A DNA stretch of 64,000 bases from Epithemia pelagica (Eukaryota > Protista > Bacillariophyta): the NCBI GenBank assembly GCA_946965045.2, contig OX337229.1, positions 1,984,001 to 2,048,000 on the forward strand, read 5' to 3'. Below are positions 3,036 through 11,765 of this stretch, in pieces. The notes beneath the pieces are model-generated. The model saw only the letters and a list, made by a program, of their open reading frames with translations, had not been told where the DNA came from and ran no database searches. Each line of letters starts with the position of its first letter. Within the stretch, counting starts at the first letter, position 1. The position numbers and the translations under genes were made by a program.

Positions 3036-4417
3036 ATGGACGAGGACGAACTACTGGGGAAGCTCGAGAAAGGCGATGCATTCGTCATCGCCGAACTCCG
3101 CAAATGCATCCTTCAAGAGTCCAATGACTCGTTGCCTAGATTGTTCGCGCATTGGTTCAAGACTTGTTTGAATCAGTTTTGCGTCGCCGTGTCCAAAGAC
3201 CATCCAGATCTTCCCCTCTTGTCCGAGACGAAACGCCTTGGTCAGCTCTTGGAGATTCATCTCAAGGTGTGCCAAGTGGACGAGATTTTTGCTCACGAAC
3301 TAGCATGTGAAGGTTCACACATGCAGTTGCTCAGAATCATTCAATCTCCCATGCTGGGTGAACCAATCTGTGAAAGAAATCAAGATATTGTTATGGAGTT
3401 GCAAGACATTGCATGCTCCATAGCAGCAACTTATGATACCTTTCCCATGCGAGTGACCCCTTTTACCTTGGAGGAGCCACAAGAACGTCTTCCTTTGACC
3501 TTTCTCATTGCACCCGTAACAGAAGATGACAACCCCTGTGACGACGTGGTGGAAAACGACAGGATAAACACGTCAAAGAACCAATTGCCCACAGAATCCA
3601 TCTTGATTCATCAAGTAGCGAAGCGGCAATCTGCACAAGAAGATGTTGGGTTTGGTATGTCTCAATATGCATGCGAGTGGTTTGGTTGAAGCTTTTTTTC
3701 TTATTTCGTCTTTTTTGTTTGCAATTCTTGTGAATTTGTATAGTCATGTGGCCCTCGGCGGTTGTTCTGTCTCGTTGGATTGCCACCAATCCTTCTATTT
3801 TGTACGATTCTCAACAAGTTTTGGAACTTGGAGCTGGCTGTGGTCTAGTGGGTCTCCTGGCCTCTCGAATACTTCACAACAGGACAAACTCAACAATAGA
3901 CACTGTCGTAAATGAGACTTCTTCTACGGTTCTTTTGAGCGATTTCAATCCGTGTGTGCTTGAAAATCTGAAACGAAATATCCTTTTGAACAGCGTCTCT
4001 AGTGTATGTTCGACCTGCGGTCTGGATTTCTATCAACAAGGTGAAGCAAGTGACGACACTGGTGAACACAACGACGGAGGATGGTTGGACATGAATGGCG
4101 TTCGACATACTCCAGTGGATGTTGTTTTGGGTGCCGATATTATCTGTCAGCCGTCCGACGCTGTGGCGGCATCTCGGACCATTTGGCATGCGCTCACTCC
4201 TGGAGGACGAGCCTACATTGTCTGTGCCACATCGGCGCATCGATTTGGCGTAGACGTGTTTCCCACTGCGTGTGCTCAAATGGGCCTGAAAATTGAGATG
4301 CAAAATGTGGCCAACCTGTACCAAGGAGCATTGCTCACCAACGGATTGGAACAGACCACCGGCTATGTTTCTGGGATGGAGTTGACCATGTTTACCATTG
4401 AAAAGCCACAGCAATGA
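3036..4417 (+). CDS. METTL21/Methyltransf_16-type protein lysine methyltransferase (intron 3655-3743)
   Basis: Spliced DVGFVMWPSAVVL, VLELGAGCGLVG (SAM motif I), LSDFN, VVLGADII. Confidence 0.85.
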
Positions 4418-4733: not shown

Positions 4734-6368
4734 CTATTCCCGCATCTGGTCAAAGAGGCAGTTCGAGTCTGCGCTCTTAAACCGAAGTGCAATTCCCTTC
4801 AGTTTAGTGGCAGAGGTTCGGTCGTCCAATAGTTTGCCACCATTGATGATTCCCTCTTGGTTGGACGTTGGTACAGCAATGACAGAGTCCGCCGATGTGG
4901 CAAAGTGACTGATCATGAGCATGGAGGTTTCTGTCACCACTGGGATGGTGAGAACATAATATGATTTGTCTCCCAAACTGTACGCCACCACCAACTCTCC
5001 ACCACTGCTAACAAAATCCCCGTCCATCGACTGGGCAGACACACCAAGATCCTCAACCAAGTTGGTCAGAAAGACAACCCTTCCACGGTATGTATACTCC
5101 GCAATTTTCTTGGTCATGTCAACGACATCTTTGCCACTGTTGTAAAGAGCCAAAGAAATGCGAATGGGTACAGGAAAGTTGAGCGCAGTCAAGAATCGAA
5201 CCGTCCATGGACAATAATCAACAAAATCCAATAGGAACATGTTCCAGGTGTCTGTCGAATGACTTCTCAAAAATTTGTTGAGAGTTTGTTGTTTGTAGAG
5301 CTGTTGCGACAAACTCATCGGGCGTAGGGGATTGGTTCCCGCCAGCGCTTTCATCACATCCATGGCACCACCGACTCCAGGGGTCAAGACAAACTGTGAA
5401 CAATGTAAATGATGCTGCTTTTTGTTTCCATGCCTTCGAATATCATCCAAAACCATACTGAACAAGTCATTGCAGTTCCGCGTATTGAACCATAGATTGC
5501 GCATCCAAACATCGGCATTGATCACATCAAATTCGGCTTCTAGTTCGCTTTCCGTCCACTCGCGAGAGTGTTTGGCATTGCCCTTGGATGCCGATACCTT
5601 TAAATCTTGACAGAACCGAGGATGAAACAACACAATAACTTGTTTCCCCTTTTGTTCCAAATCGTGAAGGGTCCACCGCGATAACAGGTGGGTCATTTCG
5701 GCCGATGTGATGAGGCGGCTGTTGAATGTTTCGTGAATTTGTTTCAAAAGGAAGAGCTTTTGTTCACTTGCAAATGCCACCCCATACTCAGGGACCAGAT
5801 TAAGGATGAGAACTTCCTTGGTATGAGCGTTTGCAAACATTTCAATTTGCCGCAAGATAGGTAAAAAGGGGCCGGCCTGCATGGATCCATGCCAAACTCC
5901 AATATCCGATGGTCTTTTGCTTCCCTTGAAACCACCAACTCGTAGATCCAACAAGCGAATTCCTGCCTCGAGTTGTTCCAACACGGATAAATTTTGGCAG
6001 CGAGCAATGGCACTGAATGGTCGACTGGGTTGAATGGTGGAGGATGCGGCATTGTGAGTACCAACCACCAGAAGGTCACGATATCGGAGTGTGGGTTCCA
6101 GATTGGCCAAATGTTCCATCCAACAACAAGCCGCACCACCCGGTGCGTGCAGGGCCGACCGTTCGGCTCCCTCTAGATTTCCCAAACTGACACCCGATGC
6201 TTCAAACAAGTTGGAACTTCCATCAGTGGCAGGTGAGGGCATACAGCATGACATTTGCATCCAATTCAAGGCCAAGGAATTGCAGGGGCAGTCTGTGAGC
6301 TCAAACAACCGACTCATCTTTTCAAATTCAGTGGATGTTGCGAGAGGATATCTGGATGGTGTTTTCAC
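4734..6368 (-). CDS. PI-PLC X-domain (PLCXD-like) phosphodiesterase with C-terminal extension; start uncertain
   Basis: GTHNAAS, CQNLSVLEQLEAGIRLLDLRV, WHG, EVLIL motifs in a 544-aa ORF. Confidence 0.8.
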   Translation of the reverse strand: MKTPSRYPLATSTEFEKMSRLFELTDCPCNSLALNWMQMSCCMPSPATDGSSNLFEASGVSLGNLEGAERSALHAPGGAACCWMEHLANLEPTLRYRDLLVVGTHNAASSTIQPSRPFSAIARCQNLSVLEQLEAGIRLLDLRVGGFKGSKRPSDIGVWHGSMQAGPFLPILRQIEMFANAHTKEVLILNLVPEYGVAFASEQKLFLLKQIHETFNSRLITSAEMTHLLSRWTLHDLEQKGKQVIVLFHPRFCQDLKVSASKGNAKHSREWTESELEAEFDVINADVWMRNLWFNTRNCNDLFSMVLDDIRRHGNKKQHHLHCSQFVLTPGVGGAMDVMKALAGTNPLRPMSLSQQLYKQQTLNKFLRSHSTDTWNMFLLDFVDYCPWTVRFLTALNFPVPIRISLALYNSGKDVVDMTKKIAEYTYRGRVVFLTNLVEDLGVSAQSMDGDFVSSGGELVVAYSLGDKSYYVLTIPVVTETSMLMISHFATSADSVIAVPTSNQEGIINGGKLLDDRTSATKLKGIALRFKSADSNCLFDQMRE

Positions 6369-6728
6369 AAAGAATGACGCCTATGTTTATCGATCGACTT
6401 TCTCCCAAGGGCAGACACAGACACACCCATGTAGTGATCGCCAATATGCCAATGGGTTCCCACTCCCACTCAAATTTTTTGAGATCATTGTTGCATCGTC
6501 ATGCATTCTTCGATGCGGCGAATGTGGCGAATAGCGAGCGAGCGTCTTCCACGTACTTTGGTCAGACTCCGCGTAATATTCAGTCGCGTTATCAACGACA
6601 GGAAAATATTATGCGCGACTTTTATGCGACCATAATAATGATTTCTGAAATCGGCTCATTTTTTTGGATACCCTTTTTGGAGTACCTTACATGTAGCAAA
6701 AGACAACCGAAGAACAAACACCACCACC

Positions 6729-7480
6729 ATGAAGTGTGCTCCGTCCAAGAATCTGAATGTGGCCTATCCACAGTTTGAAACTGCTAAAGAAATGTATGCC
6801 CATCTTCGTGAAATCACCAAACCAGTGAGTGCTTTGTCCAGTGTTTCTACTAGTGTATCCTCGCATGTCATTGTTACTGTTCTGAAGAACGTTTTCTGTC
6901 AACAAGCTGATCATGTGTCGGTTATTGCTTACAGGGTGGAGAGTTGGTGGTACGGAATTTTGTGGGTGTGATACAAGATATTTCCCCCGAGGCCTCATTG
7001 GTGGAAACAGAACTGTTTCCAGCCGGTGCCTTGCATTACTACACCAAGAAAAACATGGGCTGGGAGTACAGTCCAGAGGAGCAAGAAAAGTGGCAACTGC
7101 AGGAACGTGGCGGGGCTCAAGGAGATTACCGAGATGGCATGGCAGAAAAGATTGCCAATGTCATTGATTGCTTGTCGACTGAGCCACTCAGTAAACGAGC
7201 CGTCATACCTATCCCCTTCAGTCGAGATGGCAGTGCCTCGATTGATTGGCATGATGCCGGACAATCCAAATGTTGCCGGGAATTGCACTTTTATTTGGAA
7301 GACAGCAAGCTGAAATGTACCGGCATTGTACGAATGCAAAATGCCAACATTTTTGTCAAGAACATTCATTTCTTTGCCGTTCTGATTCATCATGTTGCTC
7401 AAAAACTAAATGTACCAGTCGGCGAGTATACTCATTGGATCACCAACTTATGTCATGATCGATCTGCTACAAGTTGCTAA
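6729..7480 (+). CDS. Stand-alone divergent thymidylate synthase / dCMP-hydroxymethylase-fold protein (~213 aa; intron 6825-6934)
   Basis: Phase-0 GT-AG intron joins MKCAP...ITKP to GGELVVRN. IANVIDCLSTEPLSKRAVI, KCCRELHF and VRMQNANIFVKNIHFFAVLIHHVAQKLNVPVGEYTHW align by eye with the TS core. Confidence 0.7.
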
Positions 7481-7621: not shown

Positions 7622-8188
7622 TCAAATGCCGTACTTGATTTTCATGGTCAACAGACCTTGTTGACCCAGGAGGATTTCGTGAATAAAGGTGAAGATACCG
7701 AGCCAAAAAACTGGGGTAATATCAACGCCAAATGCAGGAGGGATGACACCTTTGACAGCTCGCAGCAACGGCTCAGTAAGAAAAGCCACCAAGGCCCAGG
7801 GCATGTCGGAAATTTTGGTTTCCGGATACCAACTCAGGACGACACGGGCCAACATGGCAAACGACAGGAAATTCAAAAATGGGTCCAAAAACGAGGCAGC
7901 GGGTTGCACCCATGCCTGTGTTTCCGACAATTGTAGAGAGGAGGAAAGAACGGCAGCCGAGGCTGTGACTGTGTCTGGGTCTACCGCGTATAGGGCGCTA
8001 CTCTGGGCCTTGTCGCCGTCGTCGTGACGGCCGCACGGTGGACCAAACTTGCGCGAGTATCTTGGACGACGACAGTCGCAATCAGTCGCTAGGGGCATAA
8101 AGCCTTGTGCCGCATGAAGCGTAGCAAATATAAGCAGGAGGAAGACCTCAATTCTGAACGAAGAAGAAAACAGACGATGCTGCGTCAT
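7622..8188 (-). CDS. YGGT/YlmG family plastid membrane protein with bipartite presequence
   Basis: Signal peptide ...HAAQG-FMP; LARVVLSWYP, LTEPLL, FGVDITPVFW. Confidence 0.85.
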   Translation of the reverse strand: MTQHRLFSSSFRIEVFLLLIFATLHAAQGFMPLATDCDCRRPRYSRKFGPPCGRHDDGDKAQSSALYAVDPDTVTASAAVLSSSLQLSETQAWVQPAASFLDPFLNFLSFAMLARVVLSWYPETKISDMPWALVAFLTEPLLRAVKGVIPPAFGVDITPVFWLGIFTFIHEILLGQQGLLTMKIKYGI

Positions 8189-8276
8189 GGTGAAAAATGA
8201 TTCGATGTGTGTATCGATGATGATGGATTGGATTTTCGATGATGTGGAGCGCATCTATTCCACTGACCACGCATGA

Positions 8277-11200
8277 TTGAAAATCCTCATCGCTCTCTCT
8301 GCGAAGACTCAACCCCAGCCCCCAAACGTTGTCCCGCCGCTCCCCATCATTTTGCCCCGTCCCCGATGCATGCTAATCTACACATCAAAATCACAATGCG
8401 CGATGGAGATGGAGATGGAGGGAGAAAATTTTACCGCCACTATCTTTCACGAATCCGCTCACTCGTTTTCCTTTTTGCCTTTGTTGGGCCTCAACTTTTC
8501 CAAAACGACTTCCTTCACCATAACAACCGATTCCAACCTTTTGCCTGCGGAGGTAGTTGGTGGCGGCGGCGACAACAACAACAACAACAGCAGCAGCAGT
8601 GGGCAAGAAGTGTCAACCACCGGCGAAGAAAATAACAGCCGCATCAACGAGAAGGACGAAAGCATTTGTGTTCCACAACAACAACAAGCATCACACTCCT
8701 TCGAGGACCAAAACAACCACGCGTCATTGCTGACCACAGCAACAACAACCACGTCACAAGAGTTATCGTCGGGAACGCAAGGCTCAGGGAGTAACAAGAC
8801 CGACGACCCAACAACGGACGAGTTGGCAACTGCATTGGAAAGTGTTGTGATAAGGGACGTCAAGAGTAATAGTACGACGGACGGACTTTCGAGTGATTTG
8901 GAAAACAACCAGGTCCAGACCGGGAAGGAAGATCTCGAACAAGAGAAGGACGTCTTGAGGTGGTCTCCATTGGATCCACAAGATTTGGAGGGGCCTGAGT
9001 CTTCCGAATATTTGTTTACGCAGGAGGAATTGGCCGAGGCACTTCGATTTCTTGGTGACGACGAAACCAAGGACGAGTCAGCGCCAGAAACTCAAAGGAA
9101 CGACGACGGGGACGGCAACAACAACGACCACATCGAGTCTTTGGGGCCCATTGAAACTTGGGAGGGAACGCGTATACCTTCCCCTACTCCCATTGCTGAA
9201 TCAGTCAACCCGAGTGAAGTCTTGGACGAAGCAGCCTTGTTGCAAAATCTTCTTCTTGGAGAAGACTTGAATTTTCGTTCTGTCAACGAAGAAGACGACG
9301 ACGAAGAAGAAGCGTTCTTGTTACCCACCTCGAAAGAAGAATTGGCTCAAATTTTTCTTGCGGAAGACCCGCAAGACTTGGCCAATACCAGTAGTGAAAC
9401 TGATCCGAACGAGACAAGTGCACCGAGCCTATCGTTTGAACAGGATTTTGTGGCACAAAGTATTCTGGAACAGTTACAAGGTCTCTCTTTGTCTGTACCA
9501 CCCGCCGAAGCCACACAGGAAGACGATTCGTCGTCCGATATTCCTCCCTTGCAAGAAATTGAACGAACTAGCCAGTCTGAAGCGATTGTAGCTAAAAATT
9601 CAACTCGATCCGCTTTTGGGCTACAATCCAATCCGAGACAGCAACTGGATCCAACTCTCCAGTTATTGGGTTCCCAACTGCCCTTTCTGCAGTGTGAACC
9701 TTGTCCTGTTTCCATTGAAGACGAAAAACAAGGACTGAACCTCGCCTTGCCACCCCCTGTGGAGCCAACAGACGACGAGGAGGACAGTGACAATAACCAA
9801 GACGGTTGGGGAGAAACTGCAGAAAAGGAAAGGGCATTGACAACATCCCAGAAGCCTGATCCAAGTTTTTTGTTGGGAGACGACGTTCTACCGTACTTAC
9901 AGTGCCAGCCGTGCGGTGATCCTACTGGCGAAGCTCCACCACCACCTCCATTTCCCAACAACCAATTCATCGAGGATACCTTAGATTTGGCGGAACTTGA
10001 TGCGATGATGGCAGAGTTCGGAATCACTACTGAGGTCCCTCCGCCAAATGATACAAGAATAATAAACTCCAACAATGATCATGAAGAGGAACCGGAAGCC
10101 GTATCGGACAACAGTTTCCCTCGTCCAGTGGCTTCACCATCCGTCCTTGCCGCTGCGAAACCATATTTGGATACATTTGGTGTCCAACCCACCGAGATAC
10201 AATCCCCAACGACATCGGAACCCGAACCACCAAAGCCTTCATCGAAAGTCTTCCACAACAAGGGTGAGCGAAGTTGTTTGGGACACCGCGAACGTATTCT
10301 TAGTGTGCGTTTTTCGGTTCATGGGACATTGATGGCAACTGCTTCCGCTGATTCAACTATACGGATATGGAGACCTACGACCAATACTTTGCTGAGCACC
10401 CTTTCACATCACGACCAAAACTATGAATGTTTGCGAGTTGCATGGGCGACCTCCGAATGGTTCAAGGATGCAGACTCGATGAAAGGAGATCAATACGAGG
10501 AAAACTCAGTAGACAAGGATGAGGAAGCTCTCCTGGCGACAGCCGGTGCTGATGGGCAAGTCTTTATATTGAAACGAAGAGCAAAGACGTCAACAAGTAG
10601 CAAACGGAAACAGTGGGACACCATGGCATGCATCAACCATGCCAAGGATATGCACCATTATACTCCCGCGGACGCCGAAGATCGACCACAGATTTATGCA
10701 TTACAATTTATTGACAACTTTCAAGTCAGTCCAAACATGGCATGCTCACATGTGAACAATAGAATTTTGTTGACTTCGTCCGAAAATCATTTGCATTTTT
10801 GGGAACTCATTCAAGAACCCAAACCTCAAGATAAGCTTGAAACAGTTATGGAAGAAAACGACGACGACGAAGATGATGACAAACAAGACTCTAAGGAAGA
10901 ACCGCCCGTTTATCCATGGCACTTTCGAGAAATGTTTAGCGTTGGTTTTGGTAATCTTCATACCATGGGAGGCGGCGTATCTGTGGGCCGTGTCACCGAT
11001 GATGCCAACCCGTATCTGCCCATCACGCAAGTCGCGGAAGGTGATACCAATGAGGCTTTTGGAGGAGAGCGGAACCCCAACGGACTTATCTACGTGTTTG
11101 ATGCAGCTTACTGTCCTGTCAACGGATTGATTGGTGTCGCTCTTTCTGATGGAAGTTTACGGTTGTTGAATGGTCGCGGTGTTTGTGTGTCTATTTTACA

Positions 11201-11765
11201 GCTACCAGGTGTATCGACCCATTTGACATCGTTTTGCTGGGATGCGAGTGGAACTCAGTTGGCTACAAGCGTGGCATCTACAGGTCATGTTGTAACATGG
11301 GAGATTATCATGAACAAGACAAGATCTGATGTTCAGCGGACATCTTGCCGTGCCGTACTGGGAGGAGGTCATGACCGCACCGTCTTTGGAATGCGATATT
11401 GTGGAAACCCCGATGAAGCGGGGACCGAACCATGGCTTGTATCTTGGGGCGCCGATGGTCGCCTTGCCTTATGGGAAGCTCTGGTAGATGGGGAAGTCGA
11501 TGCTCCCATTGCTACTTTGGTCAATCGCCCAGAATATCCCATCTTTGGACTCGATTTTGACGAGCGGACCCGACATATGGCCTTAGTCGGAGGTGACGGA
11601 GATGGAGGTTTTATCGGAATACCGGTAAAGCTCTTTGATGTCCACCCTGAAGCAAGAGAGAAAACGCCAAATGTTTTGGACGAATCCAAAGGGAAAAGCT
11701 ACACGCAAGATACTTCCAAGAAACCTAAACTGGTGGGCAGTAAAACTGGGAAGAACGTTTCATAG
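8277..11765 (+). CDS. WD40-repeat protein with long acidic disordered N-terminus; start uncertain
   Basis: 1162-aa ORF; GHRERILSVRFS...ATASADSTIRIW, LATAGADGQV, FCWDASGTQLATS, LVSWGADGRLALW. Confidence 0.75.
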   Translation: MKILIALSAKTQPQPPNVVPPLPIILPRPRCMLIYTSKSQCAMEMEMEGENFTATIFHESAHSFSFLPLLGLNFSKTTSFTITTDSNLLPAEVVGGGGDNNNNNSSSSGQEVSTTGEENNSRINEKDESICVPQQQQASHSFEDQNNHASLLTTATTTTSQELSSGTQGSGSNKTDDPTTDELATALESVVIRDVKSNSTTDGLSSDLENNQVQTGKEDLEQEKDVLRWSPLDPQDLEGPESSEYLFTQEELAEALRFLGDDETKDESAPETQRNDDGDGNNNDHIESLGPIETWEGTRIPSPTPIAESVNPSEVLDEAALLQNLLLGEDLNFRSVNEEDDDEEEAFLLPTSKEELAQIFLAEDPQDLANTSSETDPNETSAPSLSFEQDFVAQSILEQLQGLSLSVPPAEATQEDDSSSDIPPLQEIERTSQSEAIVAKNSTRSAFGLQSNPRQQLDPTLQLLGSQLPFLQCEPCPVSIEDEKQGLNLALPPPVEPTDDEEDSDNNQDGWGETAEKERALTTSQKPDPSFLLGDDVLPYLQCQPCGDPTGEAPPPPPFPNNQFIEDTLDLAELDAMMAEFGITTEVPPPNDTRIINSNNDHEEEPEAVSDNSFPRPVASPSVLAAAKPYLDTFGVQPTEIQSPTTSEPEPPKPSSKVFHNKGERSCLGHRERILSVRFSVHGTLMATASADSTIRIWRPTTNTLLSTLSHHDQNYECLRVAWATSEWFKDADSMKGDQYEENSVDKDEEALLATAGADGQVFILKRRAKTSTSSKRKQWDTMACINHAKDMHHYTPADAEDRPQIYALQFIDNFQVSPNMACSHVNNRILLTSSENHLHFWELIQEPKPQDKLETVMEENDDDEDDDKQDSKEEPPVYPWHFREMFSVGFGNLHTMGGGVSVGRVTDDANPYLPITQVAEGDTNEAFGGERNPNGLIYVFDAAYCPVNGLIGVALSDGSLRLLNGRGVCVSILQLPGVSTHLTSFCWDASGTQLATSVASTGHVVTWEIIMNKTRSDVQRTSCRAVLGGGHDRTVFGMRYCGNPDEAGTEPWLVSWGADGRLALWEALVDGEVDAPIATLVNRPEYPIFGLDFDERTRHMALVGGDGDGGFIGIPVKLFDVHPEAREKTPNVLDESKGKSYTQDTSKKPKLVGSKTGKNVS

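Follow-up and report, generated by a model that had tools for sequence, protein, structure and literature searches.

We examined a stretch of 64,000 nucleotides from the genome of the diatom Epithemia pelagica (contig OX337229.1 of assembly GCA_946965045.2, forward-strand positions 1,984,001 to 2,048,000), hereafter called the window, in which sequence and translation place a two-exon gene on the plus strand (6729-6824 and 6935-7480). It encodes a protein of 213 aa with the predicted alpha/beta fold of thymidylate synthase (TS). This protein is not the dTMP synthase of the cell; very probably it is a folate-independent enzyme that acts at C5 of a uracil nucleotide. The gene is composed of the following parts:

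6729-6824, plus strand: exon 1, 32 codons from the ATG, encoding an N-terminal segment with the conserved pattern NLN..FP.F.TA.E.Y.H.R (translation, full-length transcript-derived orthologues, RNA contig)
6825-6934, plus strand: intron of 110 nt with GT..AG ends (sequence; skipped in a metatranscriptome contig)
6935-7480, plus strand: exon 2, 181 codons and a TAA stop, encoding the TS-fold core (translation, Pfam and NCBIfam TS matches)

An environmental metatranscriptome contig, about 98% identical to the window, spans 6720-6824, resumes at 6935 and skips exactly 6825-6934, and the transcript-derived proteins of other diatoms run uninterrupted across the junction, from ..REITKP into GGE... 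The intron is retained in DNA-type contigs of three runs (X2-X4). The splice is thus confirmed by RNA and the gene is expressed. Within the 60.5-Mb genome the family profile matches one place only, exon 2, and the gene is single-copy. Related DNA contigs carry 19 single-base differences in the coding sequence, 16 of them synonymous and 3 non-synonymous, and the gene is under purifying selection. Between 6551 and 7700 of the window, which takes in the gene with its flanks, the contigs of runs X2-X4 show two variants, consistent with alleles or close strains. In two orthologues from other diatoms, P0046 and P0062, an insert of 44 residues directly after ..FVKN resembles an unspliced intron, which would mark a second intron position in those diatoms that the gene in the window does not have.

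Sequence searches were made with exon 2, and the Epithemia orthologue P0002 (89% identical) served as the full-length proxy for structural work. Exon 2 matches the Pfam family PF00303 (Thymidylat_synt) with E 3.3e-5 and 23.6 bits, 0.7 bits below the gathering cut-off of 24.3, and the TS models of NCBIfam with E 4e-7 at best; the equivalog models gave 22-30 bits against cut-offs of 108-405, which were missed in every case. The best sequence match in the PDB had E 5e-7. The model of P0002, built from a family alignment of 35 sequences, reached a predicted local distance difference test score (pLDDT) of 90.3 and a predicted template modelling score (pTM) of 0.89, and Foldseek matched it to TS-fold structures at probability 1.0. 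With VIA-align the top match was AfhB of phage HY126 (9IQU, 9IQC; Z 19.5, root-mean-square deviation 3.1 over 188 residues), followed by MilA (Z about 17.5), the same order as given by Foldseek; ThyA structures scored Z about 14.6 (14-15) and were aligned over ThyA residues 1-213 only. Profile searches ranked the three alike (AfhB E 5.5e-13, MilA 5.6e-10, ThyA about 6e-4), and hhalign gave E 4.8e-13 to the AfhB-like protein of phage HX01 (L005) versus 1.1e-7 to E. coli ThyA. The initial annotation, made from the letters of the window, had described a spliced 213-aa gene with a TS-fold core. The first part is borne out by the metatranscriptome contig and the transcript-derived orthologues, the second by the Pfam, NCBIfam and PDB matches and the structural comparisons (VIA-align Z 14-19.5); the Foldseek search it had proposed returned TS-fold structures, with AfhB first.

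P0002 is also predicted to form a homodimer, with a score of 0.91, whereas none of three controls scored above 0.00; at least 97% of contacts recur between runs, and the partner chain has a pLDDT of at least 92. Of 30 proteins solved as pairs of one chain 20 passed the mark of the dimer tool, compared with 1 of 23 single-chain structures. Among eukaryotic proteins 17 of 29 solved pairs pass, but where no older relative had been solved only 1 of 7 did, and a pass may therefore reflect memorised structures; since TS dimers have already been solved, the prediction is to be taken as a likeness and not as proof. The predicted interface is TS-like and consists of the central sheet and a Ser-Lys-Arg loop, the Lys of which touches the active-site strand of the partner. 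Residues of exon 1 pack onto the first strand of the partner in this model, and the C-terminal residues, modelled with low confidence, are located at the interface.

A word search yielded 364 relatives, of which the best 120 are 65-89% identical to exon 2 and come from diatoms (Epithemia, Ditylum, Pseudo-nitzschia, Thalassiosira, Attheya, Minutocellus and others), the haptophyte Coccolithus braarudii and the dinoflagellate Durusdinium trenchii; the proteins of one diatom and one dinoflagellate share 72% identity. An exhaustive search extended the family to further proteins of about 200 aa, with identities of 35-50%. We refer to the algal clade, with K-C-C, R-M-Q-N and the C-terminal sequence ..N-L-C-H-D-R-S-A-T-S-C, as type A, and to the remainder, with K-C-L and R-A-Q-A, as type B. 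All family motifs (R-G-G-x-Q-G-D-Y, S-K-R, K-C-x-R-E, R-x-Q-x(3)-I-F-x-K-N and an end 6-15 residues past GxYTH) lie in exon 2. Type B genes occur in some eukaryotes (e.g. Diacronema lutheri), on phage contigs and in the genomes of 39 bacterial species from marine Acidimicrobiales, Ca. Actinomarina, Anaerolineales, Cellvibrionales, Woeseiaceae and Archangium. This bacterial scan was made with type B sequences only and would miss bacterial type A genes, if there are any; taxon names are available for a minority of the metagenomic relatives. The genomes of isolated phages contain only distant TS homologues, with at most 33% identity over about 60% of the query.

In a maximum-likelihood tree the family is split from ThyA, AfhB and a phage hydroxymethylase-like homologue with 97% support in the Shimodaira-Hasegawa-like approximate likelihood ratio test (SH-aLRT), and type A from type B with 94%. 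The branches within type A are very short, so this clade appears to be strongly constrained. The outgroup branches leading to ThyA, AfhB and the homologue from Enterococcus phage nattely are too long for safe rooting, and we therefore draw no inference on the donor or the direction of transfer. Databases label the family members 'hypothetical' or 'thymidylate synthase', and in the literature we found neither a published function nor a characterised member of this short TS-like family. In P0182 (468 aa), a eukaryote-like type B protein, a low-complexity segment is inserted, and the C-terminus is extended by a long Lys/Glu-rich tail resembling nuclear localisation signals. Four algal type A proteins (P0120, P0082, P0094 and P0125) begin with Arg/Leu-rich N-termini that resemble organelle-targeting presequences; in the diatom type A proteins, that of the window included, the conserved domain begins at the N-terminus and there is no such presequence.

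The putative active site was aligned with E. coli ThyA and with the TS of the diatom genome itself, and position counts were taken over 331 family members (150 type A, 181 type B). The motifs of the diatom protein are:

7190-7198, plus strand: Ser-Lys-Arg loop, equivalent to ThyA S-R126-R127, the phosphate-binding loop lent to the partner subunit (alignments)
7268-7279, plus strand: Lys-Cys-Cys-Arg, the first Cys (7271-7273) equivalent to the nucleophile Cys146 of ThyA, the second at the position of His147 (HMMER and hhalign alignments to TS and AfhB)
7331-7342, plus strand: Arg-Met-Gln-Asn, the Arg corresponding to Arg166 of ThyA, the Asn in place of Asp169, which binds folate (R166-S-x-D169 in ThyA; alignments)
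7358-7363, plus strand: Lys-Asn, VKN compared with P-F-N177 in ThyA, the Asn equivalent to Asn177 and probably reading uracil rather than cytosine (alignments)
7442-7477, plus strand: Thr-Asn-Leu-Cys-His-Asp-Arg-Ser-Ala-Thr-Ser-Cys, the C-terminal end, in place of the D205/H207/Y209 region of ThyA (alignments, position counts)

The equivalents of Cys146 (residue 145 of the diatom protein), of Arg166 and of Tyr94, the latter within R-G-G-x-Q-G-D-Y, are invariant over all 331 members, as is the motif K-C-x-R-E. The K/R of the phosphate loop is kept in 326 of 331 members and the Asn177 equivalent in 316 of 331, and an Arg of the first strand, probably corresponding to ThyA Arg21, is kept family-wide. 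Asn or Asp at position 177 separates uracil from cytosine substrates (PMC13326640), and Asp is found there in the AfhB-like protein of phage HX01 and in the TS homologue of phage nattely (L006). Asn177, Arg166, the Ser-Lys-Arg loop and the N-terminal Arg together suggest a uracil mononucleotide as substrate.

No family member has Asp at the Asp169 position: type A proteins have Asn there and type B proteins Ala. An exchange of Asp169 for Asn is regarded as diagnostic of 5-hydroxy-dCMP synthases (PMC13326640). His207 and Tyr209, the ligands of the deoxyribose 3'-OH, are replaced by Cys and Asp in N-L-C-H-D-R, with a register that is uncertain by one residue. The tail past the His of GxYTH comprises 14 residues here, 10-14 in the family members counted (with 6-15 as the limits of the family motif), 20 in the AfhB-like protein and 57 in ThyA, and ThyA residues 214-264 or so, the C-terminal folate lid, have no counterpart in the diatom protein. 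With Asn for Asp169, no His207/Tyr209 and no lid, the protein probably does not use methylene-tetrahydrofolate. At the Leu143 position, three before the Cys, Gln is found in 138 of 150 type A proteins and Glu or Asp in 133 of 181 of type B. Leu at this position correlates with methyl products and polar or acidic residues with non-methyl products (PMC13326640), and the residue pattern as a whole argues for a non-methyl outcome at a site that would lack a conventional folate pocket.

The two types differ at five active-site positions, including three nearly invariant cysteines that are specific to type A. One lies next to the nucleophile, as the second Cys of KCC (150 of 150 in type A, Leu or Met in type B), one at the His207 position and one at the C-terminal end; the latter two are located at the predicted dimer interface, where the phosphate loop of the partner enters. 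These additional cysteines suggest an internal thiol or redox function, and type A may not share every detail of its chemistry with the bacterial branch.

A complete gene for the bifunctional enzyme of dihydrofolate reductase and TS (DHFR-TS) was found on the same contig (G000:C2:5876331-5877309; DHFR_1 and Thymidylat_synt positions 1-266). One exon encodes DHFR_1 and TS profile positions 1-64; the exon after it encodes positions 85-266, with a score of 267 bits. Since this separate gene is present and Asp169, His207/Tyr209 and the C-terminal lid are lost, the protein encoded in the window is not the dTMP synthase of the cell. This agrees with the initial annotation, which had argued against a housekeeping enzyme and asked whether the genome holds a separate DHFR-TS. 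Its description of the protein also stands: KCC, RMQN for RSxD, VKN for PFN and TNLCHDR for HxY are all present and aligned as claimed, and the protein has no DHFR domain and is much shorter than ThyA, as the tail lengths given above illustrate. The gene had moreover been presented as a stand-alone gene; it is indeed separate from DHFR-TS but not isolated, representing the algal branch of a wide family with further members in bacteria and phages, and in the phylogeny that had been called for this family separates from both ThyA and the phage homologues.

The neighbourhoods of the 39 bacterial type B loci were clustered and then annotated. In 18 of the 39 an aldehyde dehydrogenase resembling succinic semialdehyde dehydrogenase is encoded directly upstream of the TS-like gene, and in 12 loci this is preceded by a class-III-like Zn-alcohol dehydrogenase, which resembles S-(hydroxymethyl)glutathione or -mycothiol dehydrogenases and scores below their cut-offs. 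In 8 loci of the Cellvibrionales type the slot of the alcohol dehydrogenase is filled by a 275-aa protein without a Pfam match. It contains H-x-D...H...R motifs, its model has the fold of prolyl-hydroxylase-like 2-oxoglutarate (2OG) oxygenases, and it is homologous (hhalign E 3.5e-45) to the product of a gene of about 292 aa ahead of the TS-like gene in three phage contigs. On these contigs (27-168 kb) genes for a dTMP-kinase-like protein, the 2OG-oxygenase-like protein of about 292 aa and the short TS-like protein follow each other in this order:

L004:6430-8603: three-gene phage module
L007:4344-6522: three-gene phage module
L009:4228-6579: three-gene phage module

The module may represent an undescribed pathway for thymidine/uridine DNA modification, or may convert dTMP to dUMP. 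A metagenomic fusion protein of 744 aa (P0243, L052:1274-3508) combines two degenerate TS-like domains with a DIOX_N/2OG-FeII_Oxy oxygenase, and directly upstream of it lies an aldehyde dehydrogenase gene (L052:3-1238).

Genes for handling nucleosides are found beside the TS-like gene in different phyla. A UshA-type 5'-nucleotidase adjoins the module in L035, with the same neighbour cluster again in L043, and a transporter of the concentrative nucleoside transporter (CNT) family adjoins it in L050, with the same cluster again in L042, a locus of the cultured Halioxenophilus aromaticivorans KU68F. In two metagenome-assembled genomes of Anaerolineales (L012:1318-4343 and L014:60-2920) three uridine-phosphorylase paralogues, one of them above the cut-off of TIGR01718, flank the TS-like gene, and genes for the T-component of an energy-coupling factor (ECF) transporter and for a major facilitator superfamily (MFS) transporter are nearby. 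Neighbourhoods of this kind in prokaryotes suggest that nucleosides are salvaged or broken down by way of an oxidation ladder, and not that modified bases are made.

TS-fold enzymes attack C6 of the pyrimidine with their Cys, and TS-fold and C5-methyltransferase enzymes are able to dehalogenate, dehydroxymethylate or decarboxylate C5 after this attack, as side reactions. On this background we tentatively propose, as a possibility that is well short of assured, that the specific role of the protein is to strip uracil nucleotides of oxidised one-carbon substituents at C5. The predicted nucleophile Cys145 would add to C6 of the uracil base, the C5 group would then be lost from the enolate and the Cys finally eliminated. 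The net reaction would be a C-C cleavage that returns 5-carboxy-(d)UMP, or 5-hydroxymethyl-/5-formyl-(d)UMP, to (d)UMP. In the corresponding pathway a 2OG oxygenase or alcohol dehydrogenase would oxidise the methyl or hydroxymethyl group of a 5-methyl- or 5-hydroxymethyl-uracil nucleotide to the 5-formyl stage, the aldehyde dehydrogenase would produce the 5-carboxy compound, and the TS-like enzyme would release the uracil nucleotide as the final step of a thymine-to-uracil salvage or clean-up route at the nucleotide level. This order is the simplest route that makes use of the oxidiser, the aldehyde dehydrogenase and the TS-like protein together with the genes for nucleoside uptake and cleavage. 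Stated in full, as a cofactor-free, Cys-dependent C-C lyase (decarboxylase/dehydroxymethylase) that converts 5-carboxy-/5-hydroxymethyl-(d)UMP to (d)UMP and closes a thymine-to-uracil 'demethylation' pathway of marine bacteria, phages and the main marine algal groups, the proposal is rather doubtful. Where the initial annotation had suggested a candidate pyrimidine- or nucleic-acid-modifying enzyme, a C5 pyrimidine enzyme fits well with the invariant Cys, the phosphate-binding residues and AfhB and MilA as closest structures, while the neighbourhoods favour salvage or catabolism over the making of modified bases.

Several points weigh against C5 removal. The residue roles are drawn from alignments alone, and the role itself is drawn from the gene neighbourhoods of relatives that are only 35-50% identical, so that its transfer from the bacterial loci to the diatom protein would be an extrapolation; the five active-site differences between the types mean that the reaction, too, may not be the same. 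From the same operon, the TS-like enzyme might just as well act at the start of the pathway, forming the hydroxymethyl group, as at its end, and the dTMP-kinase-like gene of the phage module looks biosynthetic. The nearest solved relative, AfhB, is a hydroxylase and not a lyase. A single-protein and profile search, run with no positive control, did not find the 2OG-oxygenase partner in the diatom genome. Finally, the diatom gene lacks neighbours of the bacterial type, and none of the neighbouring open reading frames (ORFs) in the window has an evident link to nucleotides:

3746-4417, plus strand: Methyltransf_16 lysine methyltransferase
4734-6368, minus strand: protein with a PI-PLC-X domain
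7622-8254, minus strand: YGGT-family protein
8277-11765, plus strand: WD40 protein

The nearest solved relative provides the first alternative, a flavin-dependent C5 hydroxylase like phage AfhB/RB69 gp48 that would act on (d)UMP instead of dCMP and give 5-hydroxy-(d)UMP. AfhB is the best match by profile search (E 5.5e-13), hhalign (4.8e-13), Foldseek and VIA-align (Z 19.5), both proteins are short and lack the C-terminus of ThyA, and the algal branch shares with AfhB, which reads R-S-Q-N, the R-x-Q-N motif with the diagnostic Asn (PMC13326640). We nevertheless consider a hydroxylase unlikely: identity to AfhB is only 17-28%, Asn169 is limited to the algal branch and is Ala in type B, and the family has Asn177 where every proven hydroxylase has Asp. 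A linked flavin reductase, dNMP kinase or glycosyltransferase was not seen in the diatom, and we know of no 5-hydroxyuracil product in algae.

Less likely again is a biosynthetic C5 hydroxymethylase or methylase of (d)UMP that serves a modified pyrimidine in DNA, RNA or a small molecule and either binds methylene-tetrahydrofolate in an unusual way or uses free formaldehyde. Such is the classic role of divergent TS homologues, e.g. T4 gp42 and MilA; the polar residue at the Leu143 position fits a hydroxymethyl better than a methyl product, the phage relatives adjoin the dTMP-kinase-like gene, and the alcohol and aldehyde dehydrogenases of the bacterial operons could act downstream in such a pathway. 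Asp169, however, is absent family-wide and the C-terminal folate lid is missing, and the neighbouring 5'-nucleotidase, nucleoside transporter and uridine phosphorylases look catabolic. The 5-hydroxymethyluracil of dinoflagellates is made on DNA after replication by TET/JBP homologues (PMC11572971), which for that group likewise speaks against a biosynthetic role; for the same reason we rejected the enzyme as the source of this base.

For the algal branch we also considered a thiol-dependent dehalogenase of 5-bromo-/5-iodo-uracil nucleotides with the extra cysteines as internal reductant. With a thiol present, ThyA removes the halogen from 5-bromo- and 5-iodo-dUMP, and reactive halogen species are produced by marine algae; the idea draws on both, and on the three cysteines specific to type A, the first two of which align with His147 and His207 of ThyA and the latter two of which lie at the predicted interface. 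It is nevertheless very improbable, being a pure inference from the residue pattern that leaves the type B operons unexplained and for which we found no published link. A non-catalytic protein that retains the TS fold to bind nucleotides or nucleic acids is more improbable still. No activity is known for any family member and one eukaryotic relative has a long Lys/Glu-rich, nuclear-signal-like tail, but bacteria, phages and algae all keep the catalytic Cys, the Tyr94 equivalent and every substrate-binding residue unchanged, and the type B gene lies in an operon with enzymes. A back-up second dTMP synthase is scarcely tenable, even though the TS fold is kept with the nucleophilic Cys, Arg166 and Asn177 and relatives are labelled thymidylate synthase in several databases, as the protein scores under every curated TS cut-off, Asp169, His207/Tyr209 and the C-terminal lid are absent and the genome has a canonical DHFR-TS gene.

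Enzymes of the TS fold are known from textbooks as folate enzymes and serve as drug targets. That the superfamily includes a flavin-dependent, hydroxylating branch was reported only in work of 2025-2026 (9IQU, 9IQC; PMC13326640), and the family described here appears to be another branch of the superfamily, apparently folate-independent and unusually conserved. It is a new, widespread variant within a known superfamily, and it is present in abundant marine lineages, namely diatoms, coccolithophores, Symbiodiniaceae, Actinomarina, marine Acidimicrobiales and Cellvibrionales. The prokaryotic operons provide a concrete hypothesis, the conversion of thymine- or 5-hydroxymethyluracil-type nucleotides to uracil nucleotides through C-C cleavage by a TS-fold enzyme. 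If this is true, it would be a new reaction type for the TS superfamily and would reveal a new marine route of pyrimidine salvage, for which the 5-hydroxymethyluracil-rich DNA of dinoflagellates and phages would be a resource; it would also offer a natural precedent for the direct, Cys-driven C5 decarboxylation long sought for DNA demethylation. If the enzyme should instead hydroxylate a uracil nucleotide, this would point to an unrecognised modified pyrimidine in algae.

Among known systems, ThyA and the TS domain of DHFR-TS (EC 2.1.1.45) have in common with the diatom protein the fold, the predicted dimer and the equivalents of Cys146, Arg166, Arg127, Tyr94 and Asn177. The diatom protein differs from them by Asn for Asp169, Gln for Leu143, Cys for His147 and the loss of His207/Tyr209. 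The short TS of methanogens (TIGR03283) is similar in length, about 200 residues, and the match covers profile positions 91-187 of 201; with 23 bits against a cut-off of 174 the diatom protein is not a member, this distinction being one of score alone. The hydroxymethylase-like homologue of phage nattely keeps Asp169 and a long tail, of which the diatom protein has neither.

Closer in structure is AfhB of phage HY126/RB69 gp48, a flavin-dependent dCMP 5-hydroxylase (PDB 9IQU, 9IQC), with which the diatom protein shares the nucleophilic Cys, Arg166, the S-(K/R)-R loop and R-x-Q-N. AfhB differs in having Asp177, for cytosine, where the diatom protein has Asn, for uracil; RGGxQGDY and K-C-x-R-E are absent from AfhB, and its gene belongs to a phage arabinosylation cluster. 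The second-best match, MilA, a CMP 5-hydroxymethylase of mildiomycin biosynthesis (PDB 5B6D, 5JNH), is likewise a non-housekeeping TS fold that acts on a mononucleotide, but it is about 100 residues longer and reported to act on CMP.

Regarding the proposed pathway, the nearest parallel is the thymidine salvage of fungi by thymine-7-hydroxylase and iso-orotate decarboxylase, the latter an enzyme of amidohydrolase fold that takes the free base as substrate. In this route the 5-methyl group undergoes stepwise oxidation to a carboxyl group that is then removed to yield uracil (PMC4787775, PMC6305744), as in our proposal, and the decarboxylase is metal-dependent (PMC6305744). The cleaving enzyme proposed here, which is unrelated to the fungal one, would instead employ the TS fold, a Cys nucleophile and a nucleotide substrate, so that the resemblance between the two routes would be one of function only.

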